DNA from: Macrostomum lignano
Taxonomy: Eukaryota
Assembly: GCA_002269645.1 (NCBI GenBank)
Contig: NIVC01000026.1
Coordinates: 1-64,000 of the forward strand
Length of the DNA: 64,000 nt
Reading direction: 5' to 3'
Each line of letters starts with the position of its first letter. Position 1 is the first letter of the stretch. This document shows, in pieces, positions 1 to 34,040 of the stretch. Below the pieces are notes generated by a model. It was not told the origin of the DNA. It was given only the letters and a program-made list of their open reading frames with translations, and ran no database searches. The position numbers and the translations under genes were made by a program.

Positions 1-1013
1 GTACCCGATCTACCAGATTGAGAACAAAGGTTCGTGGCTATCCAATGCAATGTGCAACAAGATGCCTAACGGGTCCCATCCAATCAGCAATGTCATGCTG
101 TTGGACTTCCGACTGTCCTGGTGGACTGCTACAGCAGACGGCTGATTGCTGTGTTGTCCTCGGCGATCGGCGGACTGATGGTTGTGTTCGCGGTGAGCAG
201 CGCGGTTTCGAGATACCGCTGGAAGCTCCGGTATGCGCTGCTAGCGTTCTGCATTCGGCACGGACTCGTGAGAGGGCGGAAGCTGCAGAGCGAATGGACC
301 TACGAGTGAGTTTAAATATTGTGCTAATGTCGGATTTATTGGATTTAGGCTAATGTTGAGCTGGTAGATAGTCTGTTCCAAAAACTTTGGTACGTTATGG
401 AACGGTATGGAACCAATGCTTAATTGGCGAGTAATTTGATTGATACTTTGATGACCGCCGCAGCGCCTGCTTCATCTACGACGAGACGGACAGCTCGGTG
501 TCCGAGTGGGTCGGCGACCTCGTCCTCAAGCTTGAGACGGACCTGCGGCTCCGCCTGTACGAAGCCGAGAGAGACGCGCCCGTCGGGTCCAACATGCTGG
601 ACGAGGCGGCCTCGGCCATCGACAAGAGCCGACACGCCGTGCTGGTGCTGAGCCGGGGCTTCCTGGAGAACAGGCTCAACTTGTACAGCGCACAGTGGAG
701 CAGCGAATCGCTGTTTATGCGCCGCCGCTCTCTGGCCGTTCTCGTCATGAGGGAGAAGCTGAGCGAGTCCGAGCTGCGATTTCCGGAATGCAAGGTGCTG
801 CATCGGCTGTACCGGATGTGCAAGCGGGACCGGATTGTAGACTGCAGCGGCTGTGGAGTCGGAGCAACTCCGCGAACCGGCTGGGACTGCTGCTGTACGA
901 CGGCGCGGCCGTGTCGGGGCGGGCGCAGGAGCGTCGGGCTCAGGAGTCCGAGACGAGTGGCTTCTCTAGCTCGGGTGATTGAAATCGGTTTTGCGTCAGG
1001 ATGGTTGAGATAG
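1..1013 (+). pseudogene. Toll-like receptor copy 1 (3' part): end of LRR/LRRCT-TM exon (1-305), intron 306-463, TIR exon 464-~955; two 1-nt deletions
   Basis: 1-305 is almost identical to the reverse complement of 3339-3643 (copy 2). Donor GA|GTGAGT at 305/306 and acceptor ccgcag|C at 463/464 give EWTY-D-ACFIYDETD, the TIR start. Relative to copies 2/3 one G is missing near 123 (tggtggac vs tggtgggac) and one near 862 (gtcggagc vs gtcgggagc/gtcggcagc). Homology stops near 955. The deletions could be long-read errors. Confidence 0.7.
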
Positions 1014-2006
1014 ACGTCCTGCAAGGTCTTACGGCTCAATTCTTCGACGGAAGTCGCATGACTATATGGCTACTACTCATGAGAATCTTGTTTTAAGGGC
1101 AAAACGCGTTGTCTTCTTTTTTCCTCGGACGAATTCTTTTCTAGTAATAACTTTGAATCTAAACTGAGTCTAAACTAATTCTAAAATTGGTTTTGACCCA
1201 TTCGAAAATTGCAAAACTGGTGGCAGAAATATTTTTTACGAAAAATCGGCTAAGTACCTAACATTGCTCTGGGAAATTAAAAATTTTTCAAATTGTTTCA
1301 ATTTTTGTATTCACTGATTAAATTTGATTTAATAGTTTTTTTAGTTTCGTTAGCTAATTAGACAATCCTATCAATACGTTTTTTTTAATTTCATAATCTT
1401 TTTTCTACGAGATATTTTTTAAAACCAATAAATAATTATCTGCTTTAATTTTTACTCATGCATGTAATTGGAATGTGTGTGGATATATATCCTACCATTT
1501 TAACTGGCCAAATTTTTGTAACAGCTTTAGTTATAAACCTGTGCAAAGAAGCTAATTACAAAAATAGATAAAATTAAATTTTACATTAGATAGCTACTGA
1601 AATGATTTGACCTAAAGATAAATTTCTTTTAAGAGACAACTTTTTATAATTATTAAAATGTACATACGAGTCAAAGCATTCAAAAACGATGTCAGCAGTA
1701 AAAAACTTTGAAATTTCAGCGATAATAGATGAAATACGCTTGTAGTGTAACGCAAAATAGATAGTTTTAAAAAAATTGTACAATTTTCGGTATTTGTACA
1801 ATTTACTTTACTCGTAGCAAAGTAATAGCCATTTTTTATTAGTTTAATAACCAAATGAAGTACGTACGAGCGTATTAGCTAGCTACAAAGTCGCAACAAT
1901 TTAAAGTAGTCAGTTTAAAAATTAAACCTTTTTGTACTACTGTAATGACATTGTACTAGCTCGTAACAATTGGTTCAATTGCTGAGATGTCAACTTTTAC
2001 GGGGGA

Positions 2007-3089
2007 ATAGACTGGGGGCAGCAATTGTCTTGAGCTCTGCCATTCTGGATTAAGTCAAGTGCTCCTAAGCTCAAACTGGCTGCAATAGCTATATTAAATT
2101 GTCACAGTGTACGACTCTGTGCATTGGGTGTAGGCTAACGTGTTGCCGCAGTCGGACTCCCAAACACTACGCAGTTGCTCGTCCAGCCACTGAGGCTTAT
2201 GTCAAAAGTGATAGACCCATTGGGCAGATGTGCAGCCGACAGCTCAGCCGCAGCTATTTGCGCGGCGCATCTGAAAGCTGCTGCGTACGGCTGTTCAGTC
2301 CAAAGACTGGGGGGTCGCCACACACCCTCAATTACCCCAGCTAATGCTGGCACCAAATTTACAGCTGGGTGAACTGAAGCAATGCAGAGTTAAGTGCCGT
2401 GCTCAAGGACACAAATTGTTCCGAGTCTGACCTTATTCAGTATTGAGTCTGACGCTCTAACCATTAGGCTATAACCTTTAGTAGAGATGGTTTGGGATCT
2501 TCCAGAAAGTAAAGGTTAGCTCGCAATTAATTCAAAAATTTTTTTTCAAAACGATTCCATCCAGCTCTAGTCGTCAGACAGAAGCGACTTCGTCCCTGCG
2601 GCCTCGGCACCACGCTCCTGCGACCGTCCCGACACGGCCGCGCCGTCGTACAGCAGCAGTCCCAGCCGGTTCGCGGAGTTGCTGCCGACTCCGCAGCCGC
2701 TGCAGTCTACAATCCGGTCCCGCTTGCACATCCGGTACAGCCGATGCAGCACCTTGCATTCCGGAAATCGCAGCTCGGACTCGCTCAGCTTCTCCCTCAT
2801 GACGAGAACGGCCAGAGAGCGGCGGCGCATGAACAGCGACTCGCTGCTCCACTGTGCGCTGTACAAGTTGAGCCTGTTCTCCAGGAAGCCCCGGCTCAGC
2901 ACCAGCACGGCTTGTCGGCTCTTGTCGATGGCCGAGGCCGCCTCGTCCAGCATGTTGGACCCGACGGGCGCGTCTCTCTCGGCTTCGTACAGGCGGAGCC
3001 GCAGGTCCGTCTCGAGCTTGAGGACAAGGTCGCCGACCCATTCGGACACCGAGCTGTCCGTCTCGTCGTAGATGAAGCAGGCGCTGCGG
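2007..3089. repeat. Inverted segmental duplication partner of 8908-10021 (TIR exon + ~560 nt downstream incl. SINE)
   Basis: Reverse complement matches 8908-10021 nearly base for base apart from scattered SNPs and a 30-nt indel in the TIR tail. The ORF track shows identical spurious ORFs at 2099-2372 and 9656-9929. Confidence 0.95.
2218..2476 (-). mobile_element. SINE family 1 copy (inside the inverted duplication)
   Basis: Reverse complement of 9552-9810. Confidence 0.7.
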
Positions 3090-5569
3090 CGGTCATCAAA
3101 GTATCAATCAAATTACTGGCCAATTAAGCATTGGTTCCATACCGTCCAGGAGCCTAAAAGCTTTACTTCGCACCTACCATGTTTTATCATCCAAGTTCGT
3201 AGAGCTTACCAATTCAGTTGTACCAAAGTTTTTGGAACAGACCATCTACCAGCTCAACATTAGCCTAAATCCAATAAAGTCCATTCTAAAGGGGAATGTT
3301 TTTCCATTGAAAGCTACTTGCACAATATCGAAACTCACTCGTAGGTCCATTCGCTCTGCAGCTTCCGCCCTCTCACGAGTCCGTGCCGAATGCAGAACGC
3401 TAGCAGCGCATACCGGAGCTTCCAGCGGTATCTCGAAACCGCGCTGCTCACCGCGAACACAACCATCAGTCCGCCGATCGCCGAGGACAACACAGCAATC
3501 AGCCGTCTGCTGTAGCAGTCCCACCAGGACAGTCGGAAGTCCAACAGCATGACATTGCTGATTGGATGGGACCCGTTAGGCATCTTGTTGCACATTGCAT
3601 TGGATAGCCACGAACCTTTGTTCTCAATCTGGTAGATCGGGTACTGCTGTCTCATCCAGTCAGTAAACTTCACCAAGTCGCATGAGCAGACGAACTGGTT
3701 ACCTCCGAAGAGCACCCTGAGATCCGGCATTCGATTGAAAGCTGCAGGCCTCAGACTCACGATTGGGTTGGCGGCAAGTTTAAGCACTTTGAGATTCGGT
3801 GTCCTCGTAATGAAAAGGTCTGACGAAAATTCGGAGAAGGAGTTCTTCGCGAGGTTCAAGGTGGTTAGATTGGGCATCCGGACACTCAGAATGTGTTTCA
3901 CTTTATCGATGTCGTTTCCTTCCAAGTCAAGAGTTCTCAGTGAGGTGAGATTCGTCAGCATTGACTTTATGATTCCATCGGTTTGTCTGCCGACTAAACA
4001 CTTTCTCAAGTTGAGGTGTTGAAGATGTCTGAGCGGTGCGAGGAACCCGTTTGCATGGCACAGCGCCTTCGACAGCATGTCGTTTTGCGAGAGGTCCAGG
4101 TTCGTCAGCTTGTCGCATCCACGGAACCAAGTCTTGTCGACAGTGCACCATGCGTTGTTATGCAGGTTGCTTAGCTTTAAGTAGGTCAGATTCTTCTGAT
4201 CCATGAAAGCATCAACAAGTGCAGCAGATATGCTTGCGTAGGACAAATCCAGAGAGCGCAAGTTGGGGAGAATGCCTCGAAGTGAGGTAGCCTTGACGTC
4301 CATGTTGTTGTTCTTCTCCATGATTAGCGTCTCTAGATTGGGCGTTTGTCGAAGAGCTTCTTTGGGAAACTCGTACAGATGGCAGTTGGTAAGGACTAAA
4401 GTTTTCAGTTTGGGTAGACCACTGAAAACATTTGGTGGCAGCAGATTTAACTTTGTGTTGGTTAATGACAGTGTTCTCAGCTGGGAGCAGTTGAGCAGCT
4501 TGTTTGGGTATGACAAGCTAATTGGTGAGTGGCTGATGGATATTTCCCTTATCCAAGGCAAGGACTCGCACAGACGATTGAAGTCGTCATACGGGAATCC
4601 CGGCTTGCTCAGGGAGAACTGGACGGAGAGTTTATTGAAGAGCGCGGGGTCCTTGACTCGGCTTGCAGCTCGCAGCAGCCTCTTCAACAGCTTCTCATTC
4701 AATCGCGAAGAAGAAATCTCGATCGTCTGCAGCTGGAAGTCGGCAAACGGTGACTCACCGACAGACACCAGATGGTAGTTAGTCATGGAAAATGAGGACA
4801 ATGTGAACCCTTCGATTTGAGCTGGGGCATCTAGCTGGAATGAACGATCATCACCGTGCAAGCCCAAATGAAGGCCAGATCGGTTAGCAGTGTTTGTCAA
4901 GCTGATGCTGGAGAAGTTTCCATGAGGGAGATTGCCGTAAATTTCGAACTGAAAGCTTGGAGCAGTTGTATTAAATTGGTATTTGATTGTCTTCAGCATC
5001 GACGGAGAGCTATTAATGGTCACCTTTTTAAGAGACCGAAAGCCAATGAATGAATTCCGACCAAGAGTTGATGCCCGTGATTTTATCGTGACACCTCTAA
5101 AGTACAATTCGGATAAGTTGACGGAGCAGCACATTGTCTCCGACAGTCTACCAAGGTCAGTGACGATGTTCATAAACTGCATCTCCAGGTACCGCAGTTT
5201 CTTCAGGTGTTTTAAAACCTTTGTTTCTTTGAAGACGTAATTAACCGGAGATCCGAAAGTGAGCTCTTTCAGGTGTTGCCAATTCGAGTGCTTGAATAGA
5301 TCCGCTTGGATTTCAATTTCCCTGCCTTTGGATTCTTTTGAGCAGGAAATTTTCAAATGGGTTACGGGACAAACGTTCGGATTGATTGAAGCAGCGATGG
5401 CGTTCATGTCAGCCTGATTGAGACAGTTCTCCATCTTCACGCACATGAGATAGGGATCTTTCCTTTCGATTGTGCAGTCGCATTTTGTTGGGAAGCGGCA
5501 AGACTGCACAGGCGAAGTTCTGCTCGAAGCGGCGCAGCAAACTGAAAGCAACACAATCAGTTGCCACAT
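2567..5569 (-). CDS. Toll-like receptor copy 2 (signal peptide, LRRNT, LRRs, LRRCT, TM, TIR); exons 5569-3339 and 3083-2567, 915 aa
   Basis: 744-aa ORF: signal peptide MWQLIVLLSVCC, LxxLxLxxN repeats, LRRCT GNQFVCSCDL, TM LIAVLSSAIGGLMVVFAV. Phase-2 intron (GTGAGT...CCGCAG) joins it in frame to a TIR domain (YDACFIY, ERDAPVG, AIDKSRQAVLVLSRGFL). Exon lengths total 2748 nt, divisible by 3. Confidence 0.9.
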
Positions 5570-6309
5570 TGTCCGATTGGCCTAGTAAAATTAGTGGCTT
5601 TTTAATTCACGCTTATTTCAAGGCTGTCGGAATAGAAAGTTGGCTTTTTTATAGCCATTACTTTCGCGTTATTAGCAGACACACGGTGGTGCTGTGCAGA
5701 CATGTATATGCATACATTTACGTCTAGTTCAAGGTTAATCGAGGGAGAATGTGTATTTGCGTCTAATTTCTAGCATAATTTTAGGCCCACAGTAGCAGAA
5801 TAAATTGCGCACTTCGCTACTTAACAAGCTATACGCAGCTACCTTTGCATATGGCTGGCACAGATGACTAAAAATAAGCCTTCTAGGCCAATTTAAAAGT
5901 CAGGTTTCAGCTAAGTTGACGATTTTTTATAAATCGTTTCGATTGTTTAATGATTTTCTACAAACTTCTTGCAGCACTTCCTGCCTTATTCGAAATTGGC
6001 ATACGCGGTCACGTGCTGTACCAAATTGCCCACAACAACATGGCAACTTTGATAGAAATCGATATGAAACTTTAAAATGGTAGAAAACATGAACGCTTAG
6101 TTATAAACAATAATCGGTTGCATTTGAACAGTATAGTAGTTGCGCTGCCTACGCATATGTTTAGGTGAAATTAACGCAAAACGCATGACATGAGGTAATA
6201 CTCGTAAACAACTTGTTTCATCGGATCGAGCATCGCTTCGCGCATTTATAAACTGTTTCTGCCCGTAGGCTAACTCTGTGCTACATTGTTGGCTGGACTT
6301 TAGCGACGA

Positions 6310-9300
6310 ATGAATTGGTTAACTTGTCTGCTTTTTAGTTGCTTTCTGCTTCTCGTGGCTTCGGGAGCGGACGCCAACAACGCGGTACCTTGCAGCTTTC
6401 CTGAGAAATGCTCCTGCGAGTTGAGGAATGCCGGCACAAAACTCTGGTGCAAAGGCATGCAGAACTGCTTCAGTCAGGCTGGCATGGACGCACTTGGAGC
6501 TTCAATGAATCCTGTAAGTTGTCCAGTGAAAATGGTAACACTCAGCTGCAATAGGGAATCCGTTTGGCCGATAGTTGAGATCACATCGGAGCTGTTTCGG
6601 CACGAGCAATGGCGGAGACTGGAAGAGTTGTACATCGGCACGTCGTGCAAATTTGTGTTTAGAGAGAAACGGGTCTTGTCGAATTTACCAAACCTAAAGT
6701 CGTTTTCGCTGCGGAACAACGACTTATCTGCGAATCTCGGCGAGTTCTCCGAAATATTCTGCTGCCCGAAGGGACTGTCTGAGATTTTAATTGACAGCCT
6801 AGGAGCAGAACAAATGGGTACACGATTCGGACAGAGATCGTTTCTAAAGTTGAATGCGTTAAAAAAGTTCACCGTGATCCGATCGCCAAAGCTCTTCGAT
6901 CGATTAGAATTTGTGCTCAACACCAGCTCGCCGGCGTTCTCGTTCCACTGGCACGGCAAGTTGCCGCACTCCAATAAGGAATTTTCTAATCTGCTCTTTA
7001 CGAATCTGGCTAGCAGGAGCAGTCTCGAACTGCTGATTTCGGATGGCGCCACCCAGTTGGAGTTGGACTCGCCTGCTCAGCTCAGTGGCTTCGATTTCAC
7101 CAGGCTGGACATCCAGAACACTCGGCTGTCGCGCATCGGAGACGCGCCATTCCGAAACTTCACACTTAAAGACATTTCCATAACTGCCGCTGGACTAAAT
7201 GAAATCATGCTGCCCCAGCTGCTGCGCGCAATCGCCAAAGTCAAGAATCCGCTAGCGGTGAGAACTCTGGCTCTGGAGTTTAACTATAAAAAGCGCGGAT
7301 TTCCGTACGATGAGTTCAACGCACTGTGCAAGGCTCTGCCACTGTTGCGTCGATTGTCATTAAGTCACTCGTCGGTGAGCTTTGGTCAGTCTGAGCAGTA
7401 CTTCGACTGTCCTCAGCTGTTCCTGCTGTCAATTACGAACTGCAACCTGCAGGACGAGGACATTCCACCGCGAGCATTCGACAAATTGACTCGACTAGAA
7501 AACATACGGTTAATTAATAATCAATTGAGTAGGGTGCCTAAGGACCTGCTCCGTAATTTGAGTCAAATCACCTACCTTGACCTCAGTCACAATAGACAAC
7601 TGAAATTGAAAGCATCTTCGTTTCGGGGCATTTTGCCCAGCCTGCAGACCCTGCGCCTGACGCAGACAGGCTACACGGAGCCACTCACTGATGCATTTGT
7701 TGATCAGTCAAATCTTACCGAGCTGCACCTGAATAAACTGGTGGAACTGAGATCCACACGCTGTCCGTTTAGAAAGACTTGGTTTAAAAACTGTTCTAAA
7801 CTGAAAACACTTAACCTAGCTGGTGATCACTTTCTGAATTACGGAGAGTGCCATGGCGGTGACTTCTTTGATCCGTTGACTAGCTTGGAAAGTCTCTCCA
7901 TAAGCTCCTGCGACTTTGGCCATCAGTCGGATGGAACTATCAAGGCTCTGCTGTCGAAACTCTCAACACTAAAAACATTAATGGCTTCCGGCAACCAGCT
8001 GGCAAGACTTGAATTCTTTTTGAACAGAAAGTTTGAAAATTTAAACCTTCTAGACGTCTCTTGGAATTCCTTCTCAAGCATTCCCGTGGACCTGATTGCC
8101 ACAACAACCCCCGCACTGCGCAACCTGGAACTAATGGAGGTCCCTCTAGCCAACATAGATCCAAAAACATTCGACAAACTGCCGAAGCTTCGCCTCAGGC
8201 TCGGTCGCAATCAATTCAGGTGCGCGTGCAACCTGCTGCCATTCGCCGATTGGCTCAGAGAGCAGTGGCCCGTCTATCAGCTGGAAAGCAAAGGCGATTG
8301 GCTGCTCAACGCCATCTGCTACACAGCCTCGAACTCTACCAAGCGAGTGATCGACTTCCGCCTGTCCTGGTGGGACTGCTACAGCCGACGCCTGATTTTT
8401 ATTCTATCCGCATCGATTGGTGGCCTGCTGATTCTGTTTATCCTAACCGCTCTGCTGTTGCGCTACCGGTGGAAGCTGCGCTACACAATACTTGCCTTCG
8501 GCATTCGTAACGGAATTGTGAACAGGAAGCAGCAGAACGAATGGACTTATGAGTAAGTTTTGGAGCTCAATAAATATCAATAATTGAACGATGGGCTGTT
8601 GGCGCACCCTGTGCCTCACACTACCACCGCTGAAGCGATTCTACCCATTCCACTGACTCCCTGAGCACATACAATCGCACAATACTGTACGCAGGCACAG
8701 CACTCATGCACACGCTCACACAGGGTGTACAGCGGCGCTGACTTTCTAATCGGTCAGGCATGCACAGTCTCTGTGCCTTGGGGCTTGGCCCTCGTGGCTT
8801 TGTAAACTTGAAATCTCAATTTGCTACTGAACATTTCTAAGCCATTGTTCCTGAATGAAGCCAGCCCTGAGCTCTGATCCCACACCTGACTGATTCCACT
8901 CCCACCTCCGCAGCGCCTGCTTCATCTACGACGAGACGGACAGCTCGGTGTCCGAGTGGGCCGGCGACCTCGTCCTCAAGCTTGAGACGGACCTGCGGCT
9001 CCGCCTGTACGAAGCCGAGAGAGACGCGCCCGTCGGGTCCAACATGCTGGACGAGGCGGCCTCCGCCATCGACAAGAGCCGACACGCCGTGCTGGTGCTG
9101 AGCCGGGGCTTCCTGGAGAACAGGCTCAACTTGTACAGCGCACAGTGGAGCAGCGAATCGCTGTTTATGCGCCGCCGCTCTCTGGCCGTTCTCGTCATGA
9201 GGGAGAAGCTGAGCGAGTCCGAGCTGCGATTTCCGGAATGCAAGGTGCTGCATCGGCTGTACCGGATGTGCAAGCGGGACCGGATTGTAGACTGCAGCGG

Positions 9301-9460
9301 CTGCGGAGTCGGGAGCAACTCCGCGAACCGGCTGGGACTGCTGCTGTACGACGGCGCGGACGTGTCGGGACGGTCGCAGGAGCGTCGGGCTCAGGAGTCC
9401 GAGACCGAGTCTGATGGTGCCGAGGCCGCAGGGACGAAGTCGCTTCTGTCTGACGACTAG
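6310..9460 (+). CDS. Toll-like receptor copy 3; exons 6310-8552 and 8914-9460, 929 aa
   Basis: 748-aa ORF with signal peptide, LRRs, LRRCT (RNQFRCACNL) and TM. Donor GA|GTAAGT at 8552/8553, acceptor ccgcag|C at 8913/8914, in-frame TIR exon. Exon lengths total 2790 nt. Confidence 0.9.
8600..8800 (-). mobile_element. SINE family 2 fragment inside the TLR copy 3 intron (another fragment ~27135-27220)
   Basis: Reverse complement aligns with 37010-37212 (ccccaaggcacag...catgcct...cctgtgtgag...gctcaggggagtc...gaatggg...agggtgc). Confidence 0.65.
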
Positions 9461-9551
9461 AGCTGGATGAGATCGTTTTGAAAAAAAAATTTTTGAATTA
9501 ATTGCGAGCTAACCTTTACTTTCTGGAAGATCCCAAACCATCTCTACTAAA

Positions 9552-9810
9552 GGTTATAGCCTAATGGTTAGAGCGTCAGACTCAATACTGAATAAGGTCA
9601 GACTCGGAACCATTTGTGTCCTTGAGCACGGCACTTAACTCTGCATTGCTTCAGTTCACCCAGCTGTAAATTTGGTGCCAGCATTAGCTGGGGTAATTGA
9701 GGGTGTGTGGCGACCCCCCAGTCTTTGGACTGAACAGCCGTACGCAGCAGCTTTCAGATGCGCCGCGCAAATAGCTGCGGCTGAGCTGTCGGCTGCACAT
9801 CTGCCCAATG
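9552..9810 (+). mobile_element. tRNA-derived SINE with CORE-like central domain (family 1)
   Basis: tRNA-like head (ggttatagcctaatggttagagcgtcagactc) followed by gtgtccttgagcacggcacttaactctgcattgcttcagttcacccagctgtaaa, which resembles the CORE-SINE domain. Further copies at 2218-2476 (-) and ~55575-55821 (+). Confidence 0.7.
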
Positions 9811-10919
9811 GGTCTATCACTTTTGACATAAGCCTCAGTGGCTGGACGAGCAACTGCGTAGTGTTTAGGAGTCCGACTGCGGCAACACGTTAGCCTACAC
9901 CCAATGCACAGAGTCGTACACTGTGACAATTTAATATAGCTATTGCAGCCAGTTTGAGCTTAGGAGCACTTGACTTAATCCAGAATGGCAGAGCTCAAGA
10001 CAATTGCTGCCCCCAGTCTATGGCCAAAAACTGTGACAGGTGAACAAAGATCTTTGGAGCATTAACTTTGTCCTCTCGATTCTGCTAAAGGCTTACCATC
10101 TCTCTCTAACCTACAAATCAGTAACAATATATGAGCGCTTGCAAGATGAAACTAGCGACACTAGCTATGAAACGGCCCTGGCCGAGCTGGGTGACTCAAA
10201 ACAAGCCTCGGTGCCCAAATAAAGACCGATGTTCGCTATTCATTTTCTTGAGCCACACTAAATTCACTTTTAATGCATTAAATTTGATCTAATGTAATTG
10301 CATACTCCTACAAGTGACAAAGAAGACAAATAATTGAGTCACACTAACATCAATCGTGTTTTATTCACTAGAGTCCTTTGTCGCATCTGCAGGTACTCAG
10401 TTTAAACAGTTTTAATATTTATTATTTGTTAATTTCGGCTATCAATTACACGAATTCGATCGTCCTTGATCTCACTGGCCAGTCACGTGGCAAGAGGGGT
10501 TCAATAAAATTGCTACAGTACCTCCTGGCTTAGCAGTTTATAGTCAGAGAGGCAAGAGCAGCGGAGAAACCCGGAAATGACAGGAAGACTAAAAATGATT
10601 TTGAATTATTGCGATTTGGAAAAAAACAGGTTTAAACATGGTTATCAGTCAGTAGTGGGGAAAGTTAAGTTAAATCGCTTTGAACTTTTATAATGAGCTT
10701 GATGCGGTTTTATGCTAGCAACTTCCTTTTTGTTAATATTGTTAAAATTGGACGCTTAAAATCGGCCTTCAAATAATTTCTTTCCAAGAGACATCCATAT
10801 AATCTAACTTTGCCAATAGTGTTCTAATGATTGCATAGCTTTTGGTTCAATAGACCCCACCCCTGTCAAGGTAGTTCGAAACCTCAACCCCAGAGTCGCT
10901 CTGATTGGCTGGTGAGCAA

Positions 10920-13900
10920 TTAAAGTTCGTCCTTGGCCGCAGCATCGGCGGGCAATTTTTCCATGAAAGTCTTGACGCCAGCCTCCGTGATGGGCGCCTC
11001 AGCATAGTCCTGGCTCTTCTTGCCGTCACTAAACAGCATGAAGGTTGGGAAGCCTTCGACTTTCTGGTCCTCGCACAGCTCTGCGGAATAGATGAGGTTT
11101 TTAAGGTTGAAAATCCTGCTCTACTGAGTGTCTACTCATCTACTCTAATGAGTGCCTACTCATCTACTCTAATGAGTGCCTACTCATCTACTCTAATGAG
11201 TGTCTACTCATCTACTCTAATGAGTGCCTACTCATCTACTCTAATCACCCACGCAATGACCCCCCAAGCTCACTCTCGTTAGCCTTGACATCGCAGTTGA
11301 CGGCCGCCAAGACTTTGCCCTGCGCTCCAACCAGACCTTCGGCCGCTTTGTCGAACGCGGGCTTGGCCTGCTGGCAGTGCGGGCACCAAGGCGCGTAGAA
11401 CATCACCAGGACGTACTTGTTAGACTTGATTGACTCGTCGAACTGCTCAGAGCCCTCCAAGTAGGTCACATGCTTCATCTTGTCCTCGGGCTTCTCAGCT
11501 TGCGCACCAGCGGCCGATTCTTCTTTGCCGCTGTCTCCCGGCTTTTTCTCTTCTTCCACCGGAGTGGGCGGCACCTTCTCTTTAGGCGGGTTGCTGATGA
11601 AATCCAACAGCGGTTTGGCCTCAATTTCGTCCTCGAACTCCGCCCACATTTCGCGCTTCTTCATCAGTCGGATAGTGGGGTAGCCTTCCACTTTCTCGTC
11701 TTCGCAGAGCTCTGTAATATTATGTTATGGTAACAGTGGTGGCGACTTTAAAGACAGTGGTTAATAAAACATCAAAGAAGCAAATACAGTGTCGGTAAAC
11801 ATCAAAGAGCCATCAGTGTCGGCAGAGATCAAAGAAAAAAGCACAGTGTCGGTAAACATCAAAGAACCACCAGTGTCGGCAGAGATCAAAGAAGCAAGCA
11901 CAGTGTCGGCAGAGATCAAAGAAGCAAGCACTGTGTCGGCAAACATCAAAGAACCATCAGTGTCGGCAGAGATCAAAGAAGCAAGCACAGTGTCGGCAGA
12001 GATCAAAGAAGCAAGCACAGTGTCGGCAGAGATCAAAGAAACAAGCACTGTGTCGGCAAACATCAAAGAACCATCAGTGTCGGCAGAGATCAAAGAAGCA
12101 AGCACAGTGTCGGCAGAGATCAAAGAAACAACACAGTGTCGGCAGAGATCAAAGAACTTGTCCCAAATGTCAACAATCCACTCACTCTGGTTGTCCTTCT
12201 GGTCGCAGTTGATCGCCGCCAAGATATTTCCTGCCACCGGTTTGGCTTCCAAATCCTTGGCCGCCTTCTCGAACTTCGGTTTGCTGTCCTTGCAGTGCGG
12301 GCACCAGGGAGCATAGTAAAAGACCAGAACGAACTCATGGCTATTTAGGATCTCTGAGTAGTTGCCGGCGCCCAGGTAGGTCACGCCGGCCATGCTGCGA
12401 TGGTTAAAACGGATTGAAAAAATTTAAATAATCTGACTAGCTATACTAGGTCCCGATCAAGTACTGAAAGTAGTGCGCATTGTAAAAACTAGTATTTATT
12501 ATGATTATATTAATAAACGATTACAACGTACTGTCCACCTAAGGCAATGTCGTTAACACACCGAAGACAATGTCGGTAATACACCGAAGACAATGTCGGT
12601 AATACACCGAAGACAATGTCGATAATACATTAAAGACAATGTCAATAACACATCGAAGACAATGTCGGTAATACACCGAAGACACTGTCGGTAACACACC
12701 GAAGACACTGTCGGTAACCCACCGAAGACAATGTCGGTAGCACACGGAAGACAGCGTCGGTAACACACCAAAGACAATGTCGGTAGCACACGGAAGATAG
12801 CGTCGGTAACACACCAAAGACAATGTCGGTAACACACCGTAAACAGCAATTACGAGAGCAGCAACTCACAAGGTGTCGGGCTCCGAGTCCTGGTCGTCCT
12901 TCTCGCTGCCAGTCGAAGACGACGGCGGCGGCCGTTTCTCGCCTTCCTTTGGCGGATTCTTCATGAATTCGATGAGCGCCTTCTCGTTGTTGTCATCCTC
13001 AAAGTCCTGGATGAGCTTGCCTTTGCTGTAGAACTTGATAGTCGGATAGCCCTCGATTTTCTCTTTGGCGCACAGGTCTGGCGAGGTTTTGGTGGGCAGT
13101 GAGGGTGAGAGCGTAGAGTGGATAGATAGAGACAGAAGTGTAGAGTCGTGAGATTGTTAGAGTTGGTAGATAGAGACAGTAGATAGGTAGATATTAGCTT
13201 GTAGAAGCATGAGAGAGTAGATTGGGTAGATAGAGACGGCAGATAAGTAGATAGTAGAAGCGTGAGAGAGTAGATTGGGTAGATAGAGACGGCAGATAAG
13301 TAGATAGTAGAAGCGTGAGAGAGTAGATTGGGTAGATAGAGACGGCAGATAAGTAGATGGTAGAAGTGTGAGAGAGTAGATTGGGTAGATAGAGACGGCA
13401 GATAAGTAGATAGTAGAAGCGTGAGAGAGTAGATTGGGTAGATAGAGACGGCAGATAAGTAGATAGTAGAAGCGTGAGAGAGTAGATTGGGTAGATAGAG
13501 ACGGCAGATAAGTAGATAGTAGAAGCGTGAGAGAGTAGATTGGGTAGATAGAGACGGCAGATAAGTAGATAGTAGAAGCGTGAGAGAGTAGATTGGGTAG
13601 ATAGAGACGGCAGATAAGTAGATAGTAGAAGCGTGAGAGAGTAGATTGGGTAGATAGAGACGGCAGATAAGTAGATAGTAGAAGCGTGAGAGAGTAGATT
13701 GGGTAGATAGAGACGGCAGATAAGTAGATAGTAGAAGCGTGAGAGAGTAGATTGGGTAGATAGAGACGGCAGATAAGTAGATAGTAGAAGCGTGAGAGAG
13801 TAGAGTGTGTAGATAGAGACGGCAGATAAGTAGATAGTAGAAGCGTGAGAGAGTAGATTGGGTAGATAGAGACGGCAGATAAGTAGATAGTAGAAGCGTG

Positions 13901-14488
13901 AGAGAGTAGAGTGTGTAGATAGAGACGGCAGATAAGTAGATAGTAGAAGCGTGAGAGAGTAGATTGGGTAGATAGAGACGGCAGATAAGTAAATAGTAGA
14001 AGCGTGAGAGAGTAGATTGGGTAGATAGAGACGGCAGATAAGTAGATAGTAGAAGCGTGAGAGAGTAGAGTGTGTAGATAGAGACGGTAAATAGAAGAAG
14101 TGTCAGAGAATAGAGTGGGAGTGAGAGAACGCACATGTCACTGCCCGAAGTCCAATGTACGGTAACTACCGATATGTAACGAAAAGAACTTATTAGCCAA
14201 AGCATGACACGGTAAATTACCCTGATTCTTCTTTTCATCGCAGTTGACCATGCCCATAACTTTGCCAGGCTCTTTGGTCACCTCCTTGGCTGCGTTATTG
14301 AACTTCGGCTTGGCCTCGACGCAGTGCGGGCACCAGGGCGCGTAGAACATCACCAGGGAGCCATCGTTGGTGTCGATAGTCTTGTGAAAGCTGGCCGCGT
14401 CGAGTTCAAGAGCCTCGGCGCTGACGGAATGCGCCAGAATGGGCAGCAGCAGCAGGATGGCTAGCAGTGACTGATTTTCCAACAGCAT
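10920..14488 (-). CDS. ER protein disulfide isomerase family protein: signal peptide, three thioredoxin domains (WCPHC x3), C-terminal KDEL; exons 14488-14221, 13077-12870, 12394-12186, 11711-11274, 11080-10920; 427 aa
   Basis: All junctions are GT-AG with matching phases (1,2,1,1), total 1284 nt. Three FYAPWCPHC motifs, each with a downstream GY/FPT cis-Pro loop. Ends ...ADAAAKDEL*. Architecture resembles TXNDC5/ERp46; the CPHC motif resembles PDIA5. Confidence 0.9.
11118..11245. repeat. 24-bp minisatellite in PDI intron 4
   Basis: Unit ctactctaatgagtgcctactcat, about 5 copies. Confidence 0.9.
11765..12160. repeat. ~21/24-bp minisatellite in PDI intron 3
   Basis: Unit cagtgtcggcagagatcaaagaa(gcaagca). 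Confidence 0.9.
12550..12840. repeat. ~21-bp minisatellite in PDI intron 2
   Basis: Unit acaccgaagacaatgtcggta. Confidence 0.9.
13190..14090. repeat. 53-bp minisatellite in PDI intron 1
   Basis: Unit agtagattgggtagatagagacggcagataagtagatagtagaagcgtgagag, period 53. Confidence 0.95.
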
Positions 14489-24519: not shown

Positions 24520-24705
24520 GTATCTATCCATCTATCTATCTATCTGTCTATCCGTCCATCTATCTATCTATCTATCTGTCTGTCTGTCTATTTATCTATC
24601 TGTCTATCTATCTATCTATCTATCTGTCTATCTGTTTATCTATCTATATATCTATCTGTCTATCTATCTATATATCTATCTATCTATCTATCTGTCTATC
24701 CATCC

Positions 24706-24765
<60 letters not shown>

Positions 24766-24793
24766 GTCTGTCTATCCATCCATCCATCCATCC

Positions 24794-24865
<72 letters not shown>

Positions 24866-25002
24866 GTCTATCTGTTTATCTATCTATATATCTATCTGTC
24901 TATCTATCTATCTATCTGTCTATCTGTTTATCTATCTATCTATCCATCTATCTATCTATCTATCTATCTATCCATCTATCTATCTATCTGTTTATCTATC
25001 TG

Positions 25003-25061
<59 letters not shown>

Positions 25062-25245
25062 GTCTATCTGTTTATCTATCTATCTATCCATCTATCTATC
25101 TATCTATCTATCATCTGTCCATCCATCCATCTATCTATCTATCCATCTATCTATCTATCCATCTATATATCTATCTATCTATCTGTCTATCCATCCATCT
25201 ATCTATCTATCTATCTATCTGTCTATCTATATATCTATATATCGA
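24520..25245. repeat. (TATC)n / GATA microsatellite, ~720 bp
   Basis: Direct reading, with TGTC and TCCA variants. Confidence 0.95.
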
Positions 25246-26029
25246 TCTACTTTTGCCTATTTATATTAGTTATCATTCATCAGTGCACTAGAAGAATTAT
25301 ACTAGCTTGTAAGTTTAAGCTTCAATTCAGAATAACTTGCTGTTATTACAGCAAGTCTAAATGAAAGATAAATGTACACAAGGGAAAATAAATTATCGTA
25401 TTATATAAATGCACTGCTACTGGAAGCAGGAAAAAGCCACGCCACTGCCAAACACACGATTATTATTATTATAACTGTCAGACCCGCTGCCATCCTCTCG
25501 AACACACATGCACCCATCAGATGTCGGAAAACAAACCGTTGACCGAAAAAACCCTTTCCCAAGTTTCTTTCTTAGTAGACGTAGCTAAAAGCTAAAAAAA
25601 TATAGAAATCTCTGTAAAGGAAAAGCGCATTAAAATACTCAGCTAGGGAGGGCAACAGACCCCAATGCAAGAAAGTGGAGATGCATGCCACTTCTAGAAG
25701 TAAATTTCGGCATTTCAAAAATAGAATTTGCTATTGGGCTGGTGTTGGTGCAGCGGTGGAACGCATGTATATATATTGTATATATTGCTAATGCTTATGT
25801 GCGCGCATCAGCTGCAAATCTTTCACTACATACTCGTACAAACTTTGGTGCGCGTCTCTCTAGGGCCAAATAGGAAAGCCGGGGATGCAGCGGGAAAAGG
25901 GCTGGAAGCCTGAAGTGTTTTAACTTATTGGGCATTCGCACACAAGTGCTGCCTATGCACCTAGCATTGCTATCGCTAGACATTGCTGGCATTTAACATT
26001 GAATTCTCTCATTTTAACTGCGCTGGTAT

Positions 26030-32399: not shown

Positions 32400-34040
32400 T
32401 ATTTTTACATGACACCCTTCATGTCTGACATGACGCTTCTTTTGATTTTTACATTACACTTCTTTTATTCTTCCATGATGCTTCTTAATTTTTTAAATGA
32501 CGCTTTCATTAGTTTTTAAATGAGGCTTCTATGATTTTTTCATGACGCTTCTATGATTGTTTACATGACGCTTCTATGCTTTTTACATGACGCTTCTATG
32601 CTTTTTACATGACGCTTCTATGATTATTTCATGACGCTTCTATGATTGTTTACATGACGCTTCTATGATTATTTACATGATGCTTCTACGATTTCTGCAG
32701 GACGCTTCTATGATTTTTACATGATGCTTCTATGATTTTTTCATGACGCTTCTATGATTTTTTCATGACGCTTCCATGATTTTTTACATGACACTTCTAT
32801 GATTTTTACATGACGCTTCCATGATTTTTTCATGACGCTTCTGTGATTGTTTATATGACGCTTTTATGCTTTTTATATGACGCTTCTATGATTTTTACAT
32901 GACGCTTCTAGGTTTTTTATATGACGATTCTATGATTTTTACATGACGCTTCCATGATTTTTTACATGACGCTTCTATGCTTTTTACATGACGCTTCTAT
33001 GATTATTTCAAGACGCTTCTACGATTTCTGCAGGACGCTTCTATGATTTTTACATGACGCTTCCATGATTTTTTCATGACGCTTCTGTGATTGTTTATAT
33101 GACGCTTCTATGCTTTTTATATGACGATTCTATGATTTTTACATGACGCTTCTATGATTTTTACATGACGTTTCTATGATTTTTTCATGACGCTCCAATG
33201 TTTTTTTCATGACGCTTCTATGATTTTTTCATGACGCTTCTATGATTTTTACATGACGCTACTATGATTTTTACATGACGCTTCCATGATTTTTTACATG
33301 ACGCTTCTATGATTTTTACATGACGCTTCTATGATTATTTCATGACGCTTCTACGATATCTGCAGGACGCTTCTATGATTTTTTACATGACGCTTCTATG
33401 ATTTTTACATGACGCTTCCATGATTTTTTACATGACGCTTCTATGCTTTTTATATGACGATTCTATGATTTTTACATGACGTTTCTATGATTTTTTCATG
33501 ACGCTCCAATGTTTTTTTCATGACGCTTCTATGATTTTTTTCATGACGCTTCTATGATTTTTACATGACGCTACTATGATTTTTACATGACGCTTCCATG
33601 ATTTTTTACATGACGCTTCTATGCTTTTTACATGACGCTTCTATGATTATTTCATGACGTTTCTACGATATCTGCAGGACGCTTCTATGATTTTTTACAT
33701 GACGCTTCTATGATTTTTTACATGACGCTTCTATGATTGTTTACATGACGCTTCTATGATTGTTTACATGACGCTTCTATGATTTTTTACATGACGCTTC
33801 TATGATTGTTTACATGACGCTTCTATGATTTTTTACATGACGCTTCTATGATTGTTTACATGACGCTTCTATGATTTTTTACATGACGCTTCTATGATTT
33901 TTTACATGACGCTTCTATGATTGTTTACATGACGCTTCTATGATTTTTTACATGACGCTTCTATGATATTTTCATGACGCTTCTATGATTTTTTACATGA
34001 CGCTTCTATGATTTTTTACATGACGCTTCTATGATTTTTT
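32400..34040. repeat. ~22-bp minisatellite, ~1.6 kb
   Basis: Unit catgacgcttctatgattttt(t)a. Confidence 0.95.

Follow-up and report, generated by a model that had tools for sequence, protein, structure and literature searches.

The second coding exon of three neighbouring Toll-like-receptor-type genes in the flatworm Macrostomum lignano, together with a 561-nt 3' flank in two of them, is very probably kept near-identical by repeated interlocus gene conversion, and as an outcome two very different ectodomains would bear the same cytoplasmic signalling domain. The window analysed here comprises positions 1-64,000 of contig NIVC01000026.1 (window position 1 is contig position 1) and contains three LRR-transmembrane-TIR genes: c1, which is truncated at the contig end, c2 on the minus strand and c3 on the plus strand. 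Each gene consists of two coding exons. Exon 1 encodes a signal peptide, the LRR ectodomain, a transmembrane helix and, at its 3' end, the two residues that open TIR box 1; exon 2 encodes the remaining part of the TIR domain, which is divergent, followed by an acidic tail. After splicing, c3 yields a product with 100% identity to GenBank PAA93497.1 over 929 aa; GenBank annotation of c2 exon 1 is absent on all three contigs examined. The third copy, c1 (1-969, plus strand), had been overlooked in the initial annotation. The features of the locus are as follows.

1-305, plus strand: 3' end of c1 exon 1 (LRRCT, transmembrane, juxtamembrane), a 100% match to c2 in two frames
306-463, plus strand: c1 intron, homologous to that of c2 (with indels) but not to that of c3
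464-969, plus strand: c1 exon 2 (TIR), with homology to c3 stopping near 957
2007-3089, minus strand: shared block, c2 arm: exon 2 (3083-2567), preceded by 6 intronic nt and followed by 560 nt of 3' flanking DNA
2216-2475, minus strand: SINE-like interspersed repeat, c2 arm, the mirror of 9553-9812
3084-3338, minus strand: c2 intron, GT-AG, phase 2, splitting TIR box 1 (Y-D / A-C-F-I-Y)
3339-5569, minus strand: c2 exon 1 (signal peptide, LRR ectodomain, LRRCT cysteine cluster, transmembrane helix, juxtamembrane), 744 aa
5570-6309, no strand: head-to-head c2/c3 intergenic region, 740 nt, GC 0.40
6310-8552, plus strand: c3 exon 1 (signal peptide, LRR ectodomain, LRRCT, transmembrane helix, juxtamembrane), 748 aa
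8553-8913, plus strand: c3 intron, GT-AG, phase 2, sharing no relationship with those of c1 and c2
8908-10021, plus strand: shared block, c3 arm: exon 2 (8914-9460), preceded by 6 intronic nt and followed by 561 nt of 3' flanking DNA
9385-9425, plus strand: zone of a 30-nt (10-codon) indel in the acidic C-terminal tail, exact placement ambiguous
9553-9812, plus strand: SINE-like interspersed repeat with a CORE/MIR-like core, c3 arm
55594-55823, plus strand: second, diverged copy (78%) of the SINE-like repeat

The c1/c2 pair stems from a recent duplication and lies tail to tail in inverted orientation, with 26 differences among 2232 exon-1 positions; c3 is an ancient paralogue lying head-to-head with c2. 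The c2/c3 intergenic region, in which no internal symmetry was found, presumably holds the promoters of both genes. The C-terminus of c1 is short and, like its 3' flank, peculiar to this gene, and c1 shares with c3 a 30-nt segment of the C-terminal tail that is missing from c2 on all three contigs. Its 1-nt deletion at 122 is private to the window contig, those at 862 and 955, close to the end of the contig, probably reflect errors in the consensus, and a full-length, intact c1 is found at 1765-3996 of contig L002. The earlier description of a modular array is overstated, as there are three genes with only two ectodomain types, and c1 is broken on one contig. Nor are the ectodomains wired to a shared exon, since each gene carries its own exon 2.

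The near-identical inverted copies reported at 2007-3089 and 8908-10021 are found at those coordinates, far beyond chance expectation. A global alignment of the reverse complement of the first with the second yields 1069 matches, 14 mismatches and 31 gap columns (98.7% identity over aligned bases, with most of the gaps in the one 30-nt indel), and the arm pairs are 2007-2551/9477-10021 (545 nt, 99%), 2586-3093/8904-9411 (508 nt, 96%) and 2534-2612/9415-9493 (79 nt, 96%). Identity opens at CCGCAG, 6 nt upstream of the splice acceptor (10 nt with one mismatch allowed); this 6-nt start had been noted, as had the about 560 nt of downstream DNA inside the block. The distal end is sharp, at 2007/10021, and the 300 nt past it show no homology over shuffled sequence (z = -0.5). 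The c2 and c3 introns are indeed unrelated, aligning no better than shuffled sequence (z = -0.9). Homologous repair of a break with a paralogue as template, the putative route of exchange, requires homology at both sides of the tract. As the introns are unrelated, tracts cannot enter them, and the block stops at the conserved acceptor and at a sharp point in the 3' flank. A start 6 nt before the acceptor is what would be given by this homology barrier together with a conserved acceptor. Of the proposal that the exon is copied or gene-converted as a cassette, conversion is upheld by the step in dS and the mosaic sites described below, whereas movement of a cassette as a unit does not follow from the block start, which is insufficient by itself.

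A tract bounded by exons could also arise if a cDNA of one gene's mRNA had served as repair template. The block does open essentially at an exon boundary, the six identical acceptor-signal bases being explicable by selection or chance. Such RNA-mediated copying is nevertheless very improbable: the intron was kept and exon 1 left untouched, in each gene the first AATAAA or ATTAAA lies 160-200 nt beyond the block end, which thus coincides with no evident poly(A) site, and the short internal patches and the c1/c2 exon-1 tract described below suit exchange at the DNA level.

The repeat inside the block, previously called a SINE, is confirmed as such only in part: it is an interspersed, SINE-like element whose core aligns to a MIR/CORE-SINE consensus (z = 10), interspersion being indicated by the second copy of 9572-9808 at 55594-55823 (78% identical); a tRNA-like head was not found by ARAGORN or Rfam. 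Its presence could suggest that the exon travelled as mobile-element cargo, picked up and dispersed by a transposon or carried along through retroelement transduction. This is the least credible of the alternatives, as the SINE-like part takes up about 260 of 1114 nt and falls short of both block ends, no further copy of the exon or of the remaining flank was found in the 64-kb window, and both copies serve as functional last exons, each placed exactly in frame after an intron and the LRR exon upstream of it.

The per-exon step in dS that the initial annotation predicted is present between c2 and c3. The ectodomains are saturated (pS = 0.77) and the exon-1 tail (transmembrane and juxtamembrane) has a dS of 1.24, whereas dS in exon 2 is 0.056-0.075 with a dN/dS of about 0.1, and the non-coding 3' flank is closer still (4/595 differences). 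Because exon-2 dS is low and the non-coding flank even more alike, selection at the protein level cannot account for the identity. GC3 in the same genes is 0.59-0.60 in the ectodomain versus 0.86 in exon 2, as expected from long-term biased conversion, and GC-biased conversion may be the cause of the high exon-2 value. The LRR exons are, as claimed, strongly diverged (40% amino acid identity over 738 aa), but the N-terminal figure is 21/57 (37%) and not about 45%. The ectodomain divergence is ancient, and between contig copies the ectodomain pN/pS is 0.34-0.43, which points to moderate purifying selection; ongoing diversification of the sensor exons, as had been proposed, is therefore unsupported, with no sign of it being active.

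The DV1 line of M. lignano carries three subgenomes, S, L1 and L2, all represented in this assembly (PMC10733133). On two longer contigs of 342 kb and 291 kb, L002 and L003 being their labels here, the c1-c2-c3 layout is internal and collinear with the window at about 99% identity, and the locus is thus not an artefact of one contig. An assembly or polishing artefact, in which the block or its near-identity came from collapse, a chimeric join, or Pilon polishing with DNA and RNA-seq reads that map to several copies, has some features in its favour: the window opens where the contig does, three 1-nt deletions private to c1 there each shorten a two- to three-base homopolymer run, the Pilon run used RNA-seq as well as Illumina reads (PMC5730564) and the block spans the transcribed exon 2, and 36% of the assembly length reportedly lies in chimeric scaffolds (PMC10733133). 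It is nonetheless highly unlikely. The same layout and block ends occur on three contigs that differ by patches of 2-3%, an older chimeric gene model (P0015) is also ordered c3-c2-c1 in the same orientation, and polishing fixes small differences but cannot convert saturated divergence to 98.7% identity. Moreover, the 3% divergence of c3 on L002 survived polishing. At the contig level, the assembly artefact that the initial annotation had named as a possible refutation does not account for the inverted block.

A single recent event, either a segmental duplication or one long conversion tract, could instead have overwritten exon 2 and its 3' flank in one gene with the version of the other, followed by plain divergence without further exchange. 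This would fit the one sharp pair of block ends common to all three contigs, the inclusion of a non-coding flank with a SINE-like element, most easily achieved by fairly recent copying, and the existence of fixed single-paralogue differences. The comparison of nine copies (c1, c2 and c3 on three contigs) speaks against it. In the downstream block, c3 of the window contig and of L003 shows 2-4 differences in 595 sites from its paralogue c2, but 19 in 597 from c3 on L002 (Fisher P = 0.002); the contigs are themselves mosaics, with L002-private differences dense only in 7419-10096, and such allele-versus-paralogue comparisons therefore depend on local genealogy. As the c3 flank is nearer to c2 than to c3 on L002, c2/c3 exchange postdates the split of the contig lineages, and as c2 never acquired the c3-L002 type, it was non-reciprocal. 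Exon-1 and exon-2 relationships conflict across the nine copies, consistent with the predicted incongruence of LRR and TIR trees. In exon 2, the four-gamete test marks 17 of 91 site pairs as incompatible, with Rm = 4 across 477 nt. If the paralogues are kept monophyletic, seven of the 14 informative sites, a single CpG among them, require parallel changes, against about 0.3 expected by chance (P about 4e-8); as reads map ambiguously among nine near-identical copies, some single-site shared polymorphisms could be polishing artefacts. A neighbour-incompatibility (PHI-like) statistic on exon 2 was not significant, with only 14 informative sites.

On the window contig, c3 has c1-type states at 9124, 9131 and 9157, flanked by c3-type 9064 and 9304, which bounds the tract at 34-239 nt. 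On L002, c1 and c2 are 2-3% different in the 5' part of exon 1 and identical across its last ~750 nt, suggesting a recent c1/c2 exchange. The c3 flank, the seven homoplasious sites with their Rm of 4, the c1-type patch and the ~750-nt tract all run against a single event, which also leaves the exon-2 GC3 unexplained. Such an event is unlikely to be the whole history, although a founding event of the single-replacement type may have set the block ends. Homogenisation is incomplete, as single-paralogue differences persist on all three contigs, specific to c2 at 8956, 8971, 9386, 9388 and the 30-nt indel, and specific to c3 at 9064 and 9611. The c3 flank, the homoplasious exon-2 sites and GC3 thus support gene conversion, in which repeated non-reciprocal DNA exchange would take place among copies in a 10-kb stretch; c1 and c3 are in direct orientation, whereas c2 is inverted relative to both.

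The assignment of these genes to the Toll-like-receptor type, with a predicted signalling domain, is based on sequence and a structural model. Compared with PDB by sequence, the TIR matches that of human TLR2 best (E = 1.8e-5), and every one of the 20 listed matches is a TIR domain, as are the best 50 Foldseek PDB matches of an AlphaFold model (pLDDT 77). Among 110 library representatives taken at E <= 1e-3, the best nine were scanned with Pfam, which found TIR in 9/9 and LRR in 8/9; the nearest TIR relatives are TLR-type proteins of oyster, snail, insect, fish and amphioxus. Like single-cysteine-cluster (V-type) TLRs, the M. lignano proteins have a signal peptide, an LRR ectodomain flanked on both sides by cysteine clusters, a single transmembrane helix and a TIR at the C-terminus, in which boxes 1 and 2 are recognisable. 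Unlike theirs, the TIR scores 16.6-18.7 bits in Pfam, under the gathering thresholds of 21.3 and 28, and the box 2/3 'WC' and 'FW' motifs are replaced. Identity to any other TIR in the library is at most 35%.

Clustered protocadherins and UGT1A also join differing extracellular and transmembrane exons to the same cytoplasmic sequence, with one physical set of constant exons shared by splicing among the variable exons. Membership in this class is rejected for the M. lignano genes, each having its own exon 2, with sameness achieved through recombination. Human Y-chromosome palindromes, in which inverted copies around a unique spacer are reportedly kept at >=99% identity by intrachromosomal, non-reciprocal arm-to-arm gene conversion, with GC raised by biased conversion, are similar in arrangement, homogenisation and elevated GC. 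The palindrome arms measure 9 kb to 1.45 Mb, against 1.1 kb for c2/c3 and ~2.9 kb for c1/c2 in M. lignano, where the arms also span only part of each gene and are less identical (97-99%), with single-paralogue differences persisting.

The coding sequence of TLR1 and TLR6 is a single exon. The closest precedent is vertebrate TLR1/TLR6, from which the conversion process is already known. In mammalian TLR1/TLR6 and bird TLR1/TLR2, neighbouring paralogues have a C-terminal region, including most of the TIR domain, that is near-identical via repeated conversion, and diverged N-terminal LRRs (Kruithof et al. 2007, PMC2077338; Huang et al. 2011, PMC3125219). TLR1/TLR6 are tandem genes and their tract also takes in LRR 16-19, the C-terminal cap and the transmembrane domain, whereas the M. 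lignano genes are inverted, their tract is bounded by the intron at the TIR start and extends 561 nt into non-coding flank, and the c2/c3 transmembrane and juxtamembrane part is not homogenised. The interpretation given for TLR1/TLR6, that conversion limits divergence of the signalling and partner-binding part, also fits here, and a selective benefit may lie, for example, in one adaptor interface serving both sensors. Published surveys report no Toll-like receptors in this phylum, and the more novel point is that genes of TLR architecture are found in M. lignano, a species reported to have none.

Three genes that encode leucine-rich repeats, a transmembrane (TM) segment and a TIR domain, referred to here as c1, c2 and c3, were recognised at the start of the window through ORF listing, tblastn and a three-way alignment. 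The first exon encodes the ectodomain and the TM segment, and the second encodes the TIR domain:

1-305 (end of exon 1), 306-463 (intron), 464-969 (exon 2); plus strand; c1, cut by the contig end
5569-3339 (exon 1), 3338-3084 (intron), 3083-2567 (exon 2); minus strand; c2
6310-8552 (exon 1), 8553-8913 (intron), 8914-9460 (exon 2); plus strand; c3

The assembly, GCA_002269645.1, is Mlig_3_7, and position 1 of the window is position 1 of NIVC01000026.1. The genes c2 and c3 lie head-to-head with a spacing of 740 nt, while c1, which was absent from the initial annotation, lies tail-to-tail with c2; no other TLR-like copies occur in the 64 kb window. The introns of all three are GT-AG introns of phase 2 that split TIR box 1 (..W-T-Y-D / A-C-F-I-Y-D..). 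Unlike the protocadherin and UGT1A constant-exon clusters, the locus has no single physical exon set, as each gene carries its own exon 2, located 158-361 nt downstream of the respective exon 1. The spliced c3 product is 100% identical to GenBank PAA93497.1 (Macrostomum lignano) over 929 aa.

The products of c2 and c3 have the layout of Toll-like receptors. Pfam LRR_8 and LRR_4 score well above their cut-offs in both, the N-terminus is hydrophobic (a putative signal peptide, judged by hydropathy only), a Cys cluster is present at the N-terminal side, and a CxC...C...C cluster sits just N-terminal of the membrane. A single Kyte-Doolittle TM peak covers aa 689-711 of c2 and aa 693-719 of c3. The TIR domain is harder to recognise, scoring 16.6-17.4 bits against Pfam TIR, below the gathering cut-off of 21.3, and 17.3-18.7 bits against TIR_2, for which 28 bits are needed. 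TIR boxes 1 and 2 can be aligned, and the 'WC' and 'FW' motifs are replaced. A phmmer search of the PDB nevertheless returned the TIR domain of human TLR2 as the best match (E = 1.8e-5), and 20 of 20 matches were TIR domains. In an exhaustive HMMER search, 110 of 1.84 billion representatives matched at E <= 1e-3; the best nine of these, when scanned against Pfam, contained a TIR domain in every case and LRRs in eight. The top eight sources were an oyster, a snail, a stick insect, three fishes, amphioxus and one unnamed ENA record. Outside the cluster to which the query itself belongs, nothing exceeded 35% identity in this search, and no orthologue in another species was found. As the representatives merge relatives of more than 50% identity, further M. 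lignano copies could hide in that cluster. A word-indexed TIR search returned only P0014, one of two database gene models that touch the locus, and its silence is weak evidence because it missed the c3 protein itself. The AlphaFold model of the exon-2 peptide (pLDDT 77, pTM 0.69) has only TIR domains among its best 50 Foldseek matches in the PDB, with target-normalised TM-scores of up to 0.74, although the model leans towards TIR because it was built on an alignment of TIR relatives. Judged by sequence and predicted fold, the c1-c3 products are thus classed as proteins of TLR architecture with a very divergent TIR domain.

The locus is present three times in the assembly. At 90% clustering, the c3 protein is grouped with two others, encoded on other contigs (L002 and L003), and window positions 1-11245 are collinear with L002 3690-14938 (a 342 kb contig, 98.95% identity) and with L003 3685-14927 (a 291 kb contig, 99.09% identity). 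In both of these the locus is internal, flanked by a MYCBPAP-family gene and a thioredoxin-domain gene. Because of this collinearity, the same gene layout and the same ends of the block shared by c2 and c3 are found in three contigs, which argues against an assembly artefact at the contig level. A fold-back artefact at the contig end was considered for c1 and c2 and rejected, as 1.6 kb of unique sequence lies between the arms and two long contigs show this layout internally. The DV1 line of M. lignano has three subgenomes, S, L1 and L2, all represented in Mlig_3_7 (PMC10733133), which fits three copies of the locus. The UniRef model P0015 (1670 aa) follows the locus in the order c3 (antisense), c2 (sense), c1 (antisense); this older model is a chimera in which the c2 protein, read in sense, is joined to antisense translations from exons of c3 and c1, and it is useful solely as independent evidence of gene order. 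No contig carrying the exact sequence of P0014 was found.

The three genes differ in their state of preservation. The two-exon frame of c2 (2567-5569, minus; L002 6261-9260; L003 about 6260-9260) is intact in the window and on L002, and on L003 a single nucleotide is deleted from its C-terminal tail. GenBank annotation of the three contigs, which is derived from a genome-guided transcriptome, includes c3, alone of the three genes, on every contig and no gene at c2 on any. On L002 c1 is intact, with an exon 1 of 744 aa. On L003 (about 3139-3141) c1 lacks ~520 nt of exon 1 (c2 codons 287-460), the frame is lost and a stop follows at codon 295; c1 thus appears, from its reading frame, to be a pseudogene in one subgenome and intact on L002. 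Three 1-nt deletions private to NIVC01000026.1, at 122, 862 and 955, each break the c1 frame. All three lie within 1 kb of the contig end in homopolymer runs of two to three bases, each reduced by the deletion, and are probably consensus errors and not real mutations.

Beyond c3, the minus strand at 10920-14488 carries the neighbouring gene, with several thioredoxin domains and a protein-disulfide-isomerase-like character. This gene is full of minisatellites with periods of 24, 27/30, 23 and 53 nt and spans 3.6 kb in the window, 5.2 kb on L002 (14613-19776) and 5.7 kb on L003 (14601-20342), mainly because the length of the 23-nt array varies greatly. Long ORFs at 11761-12393 (minus) and 11789-12316 (plus) run across the 27/30-nt tandem repeat and are probably repeat-generated and non-coding. 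The remainder, 14000-64000, is very rich in minisatellites (23 TRF entries with a score of at least 400, several of which are the same array at other periods), and an AT-rich stretch at 32-46 kb has a GC content of 0.28-0.36. Repeats of this region include:

24521-25249, TATC microsatellite
32428-34039, minisatellite of 22 nt x 72
59845-61229, minisatellite of 34 nt x 41

One near-identical block is shared by the genes c2 and c3. As the initial annotation had described, 2007-3089 and 8908-10021 are near-identical inverted arms. A repeat search recovered them as 2007-2551/9477-10021 (99%) and 2586-3093/8904-9411 (96%) with a 79-nt bridge, and global alignment of the block gave 1069 matches, 14 mismatches and 31 gap columns, the latter mostly a single 30-nt indel in the C-terminal tail. 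The alignment also bears out the onset of identity, at CCGCAG, 6 nt upstream of the splice acceptor; the other end, at 2007/10021, is sharp. The reported divergence of the LRR exons and unrelatedness of the introns hold as well, the exon-1 products being 40% identical over 738 aa and the c2 and c3 introns aligning no better than shuffled sequence (z = -0.9). The 300 nt past the distal block end likewise align no better than shuffled sequence (z = -0.5). An old, wider duplication was rejected, as no residual homology is left in the introns or past the block end. The distal end coincides neither with the SINE-like element nor with a poly(A) signal, the first of which lies 160-200 nt past the block end in either gene. 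Homology of c1 to the block stops near 957-965.

The step in divergence at the intron is steep. Between c2 and c3 the ectodomain is saturated at synonymous sites (pS 0.77, dN 0.63), the TM/juxtamembrane tail of exon 1 has a dS of 1.24, and exon 2 has a dS of only 0.056-0.075 (pS 0.054-0.071; dN/dS about 0.1), in agreement with the per-exon dS step that had been predicted. In the non-coding flank, 4 of 595 aligned sites differ (0.7%). Purifying selection alone could be held responsible for the identity of a signalling domain, and it was rejected, since the near-identity extends to synonymous sites and to the 561 nt of flank that are non-coding; because protein selection cannot yield identity at silent and flanking sites, the ancestor of the block must be much more recent than that of exon 1. 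Within the same genes GC3 rises from 0.59-0.60 in the ectodomain to 0.86 in exon 2, a step that would best be explained by long-term GC-biased conversion. The spans compared were 8914-9460 for exon 2 and 6310-8373 for exon 1; GC3 of the c2 exon-1 tail, which is common to c1, is 0.78, and that of the c3 exon-1 tail is 0.63.

Several observations bear on whether the block was copied once or exchanged repeatedly. In its downstream part, c2 differs from the c3 of the window contig and of L003 at 2-4 of 595 sites, whereas the c3 of L002 differs from those same c3 copies at 19 of 597 (Fisher P = 0.002). As c2 is closer to c3 than c3 copies are to each other, mere divergence of c2 and c3 since a single old event does not account for these distances, and, as c2 carries no L002-type c3 sequence, the exchange was non-reciprocal. 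For exon 2, nine copies were compared, representing three genes on three contigs of one genome and not species. The c3 of the window contig differs from c1 at 6 of 483 sites and from other c3 copies at 6-12 of 483. Four-gamete failures occur in 17 of 91 pairs of informative sites, with Rm = 4 within 477 nt. With the paralogues held monophyletic, parallel changes are required at 7 of 14 informative sites (expected ~0.3, P about 4e-8), namely 8983, 9085, 9124, 9131, 9157, 9166 and 9374, one of which lies in a CpG. At 9124, 9131 and 9157 the c3 of the window contig is c1-type, flanked by the c3-type sites 9064 and 9304, a patch that corresponds to a tract of 34-239 nt. The c1 of L003 shows 11 differences from the other two c1 copies, and nine of these states occur in c2 or c3. 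On L002, c1 and c2 are 2-3% apart in 5' exon 1 and identical over the last ~750 nt of that exon. A PHI-like neighbour statistic on the exon-2 copies was not significant. The assembly was polished by Pilon with Illumina and RNA-seq reads (PMC5730564), and this polishing could have moved single variants among near-identical copies.

Homogenisation is incomplete, as c2-specific states at 8956, 8971, 9386 and 9388 and the 30-nt indel are fixed on the three contigs, as are c3-specific states at 9064 and 9611. Divergence among the three contigs is patchy, with 1500-7400 almost invariant. Differences private to L002 are dense (about 2.7%) only in 7419-10096, and those private to L003 are dense in 533-1484, which suggests, from these alignments, exchange between subgenome copies too. 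The divergence step, the c2-c3 distances that fall below c3-c3 distances and the mosaic sites together favour the earlier proposal that the TIR exon is copied or converted, and gene conversion of this exon can be regarded as well supported by the comparisons.

Interlocus gene conversion between copies at most 10 kb apart is the best reading of the locus. Exchange would be limited to the homologous stretch, such that upstream, where the introns are unrelated, conversion tracts would halt at the conserved acceptor, and downstream they would end where homology breaks off, 561 nt past the stop codon. The 3' end of the block was probably fixed by a founding copy event that brought the SINE-like element along, and at the edge of the c1/c2 inverted duplication c1 lost the terminal stretch of the block. 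Copying from an RNA template could also be imagined to transfer a terminal exon, but is unlikely, as the intron is retained, exon 1 is unaffected and in both genes the block stops short of the first poly(A) signal by the distance noted. The origin of the block as a mobile cassette is likewise unlikely; the SINE-like part, ~260 nt long and centrally placed in the flank, sets neither end. The wider proposal of a modular variable-sensor array is an over-reading, as the locus consists of three genes with two ectodomain types. Nor is ongoing diversification of the sensor exons seen, the ectodomains of the contig copies being under moderate constraint (pN/pS 0.34-0.43) with no sign of positive selection among them.

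The SINE said to lie in the block is partly borne out. One further copy of the stretch 9572-9808 lies within the 64 kb window at 55594-55823, 78% identical over about 230 nt, and the core of the repeat matches an uncurated MIR/CORE-SINE consensus in a 57-nt local alignment (z = 10 against shuffles). The start of the repeat, GGTTATAGCCTAATGGTTAGAGC, looks tRNA-like by eye and is a lead only; ARAGORN found no tRNA-like gene in the repeat, Rfam gave no match at E <= 1 in 1-14000, and a tRNA or Rfam identity was accordingly rejected. The element thus appears to be an interspersed repeat and, by its sequence, probably a CORE-type SINE.

Arm-to-arm conversion in inverted repeats is well known, and conversion confined to one domain is established for the TLR paralogues TLR1 and TLR6. 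In mammals the C-terminal 300 aa of these receptors, including most of the TIR domain, were homogenised independently in nine species (PMC2077338), and conversion has likewise been reported for the vertebrate TLR1 family (PMC3125219). The M. lignano locus differs from TLR1/TLR6 in its intron-defined boundary, its inverted geometry and non-coding flank, and its flatworm host. It offers a compact and clean case of exon-bounded concerted evolution, in which three subgenome copies in one genome provide built-in replicates for studying GC bias and the length of tracts.

Of greatest interest is the presence of genes with TLR architecture in a flatworm reported to lack TLRs. A survey that used a TIR-profile screen as its first step recorded 0 TLRs for M. 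lignano and, from absence, placed their loss at the base of the phylum (PMC8609888), and flatworms as a phylum have been described as devoid of TLRs (PMC10279657, PMC7958881); no mention of a Macrostomum TLR was found in the literature searched. The published absence probably arose because the TIR domain scores below the Pfam gathering threshold. In the older, 2015-genome gene set on which the TIR-profile survey drew, the presumed source of both models, the locus is apparently represented by no more than a fragment and a chimera (P0014, P0015). The claim of TLR loss needs re-examination because the full LRR-TM-TIR layout is present and c3 is annotated on three contigs. On balance it seems somewhat more probable than not that the early-branching M. 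lignano retains real TLRs, missed as their TIR domain is too divergent, and that the TIR exon is an intron-bounded unit homogenised among inverted neighbours. Methods for transgenesis exist in M. lignano, and function can therefore be tested. If this reading of retained, homogenised receptors is true, the base of the Platyhelminthes was not the point at which TLRs disappeared, and two anciently diverged ectodomains would feed one signalling interface.
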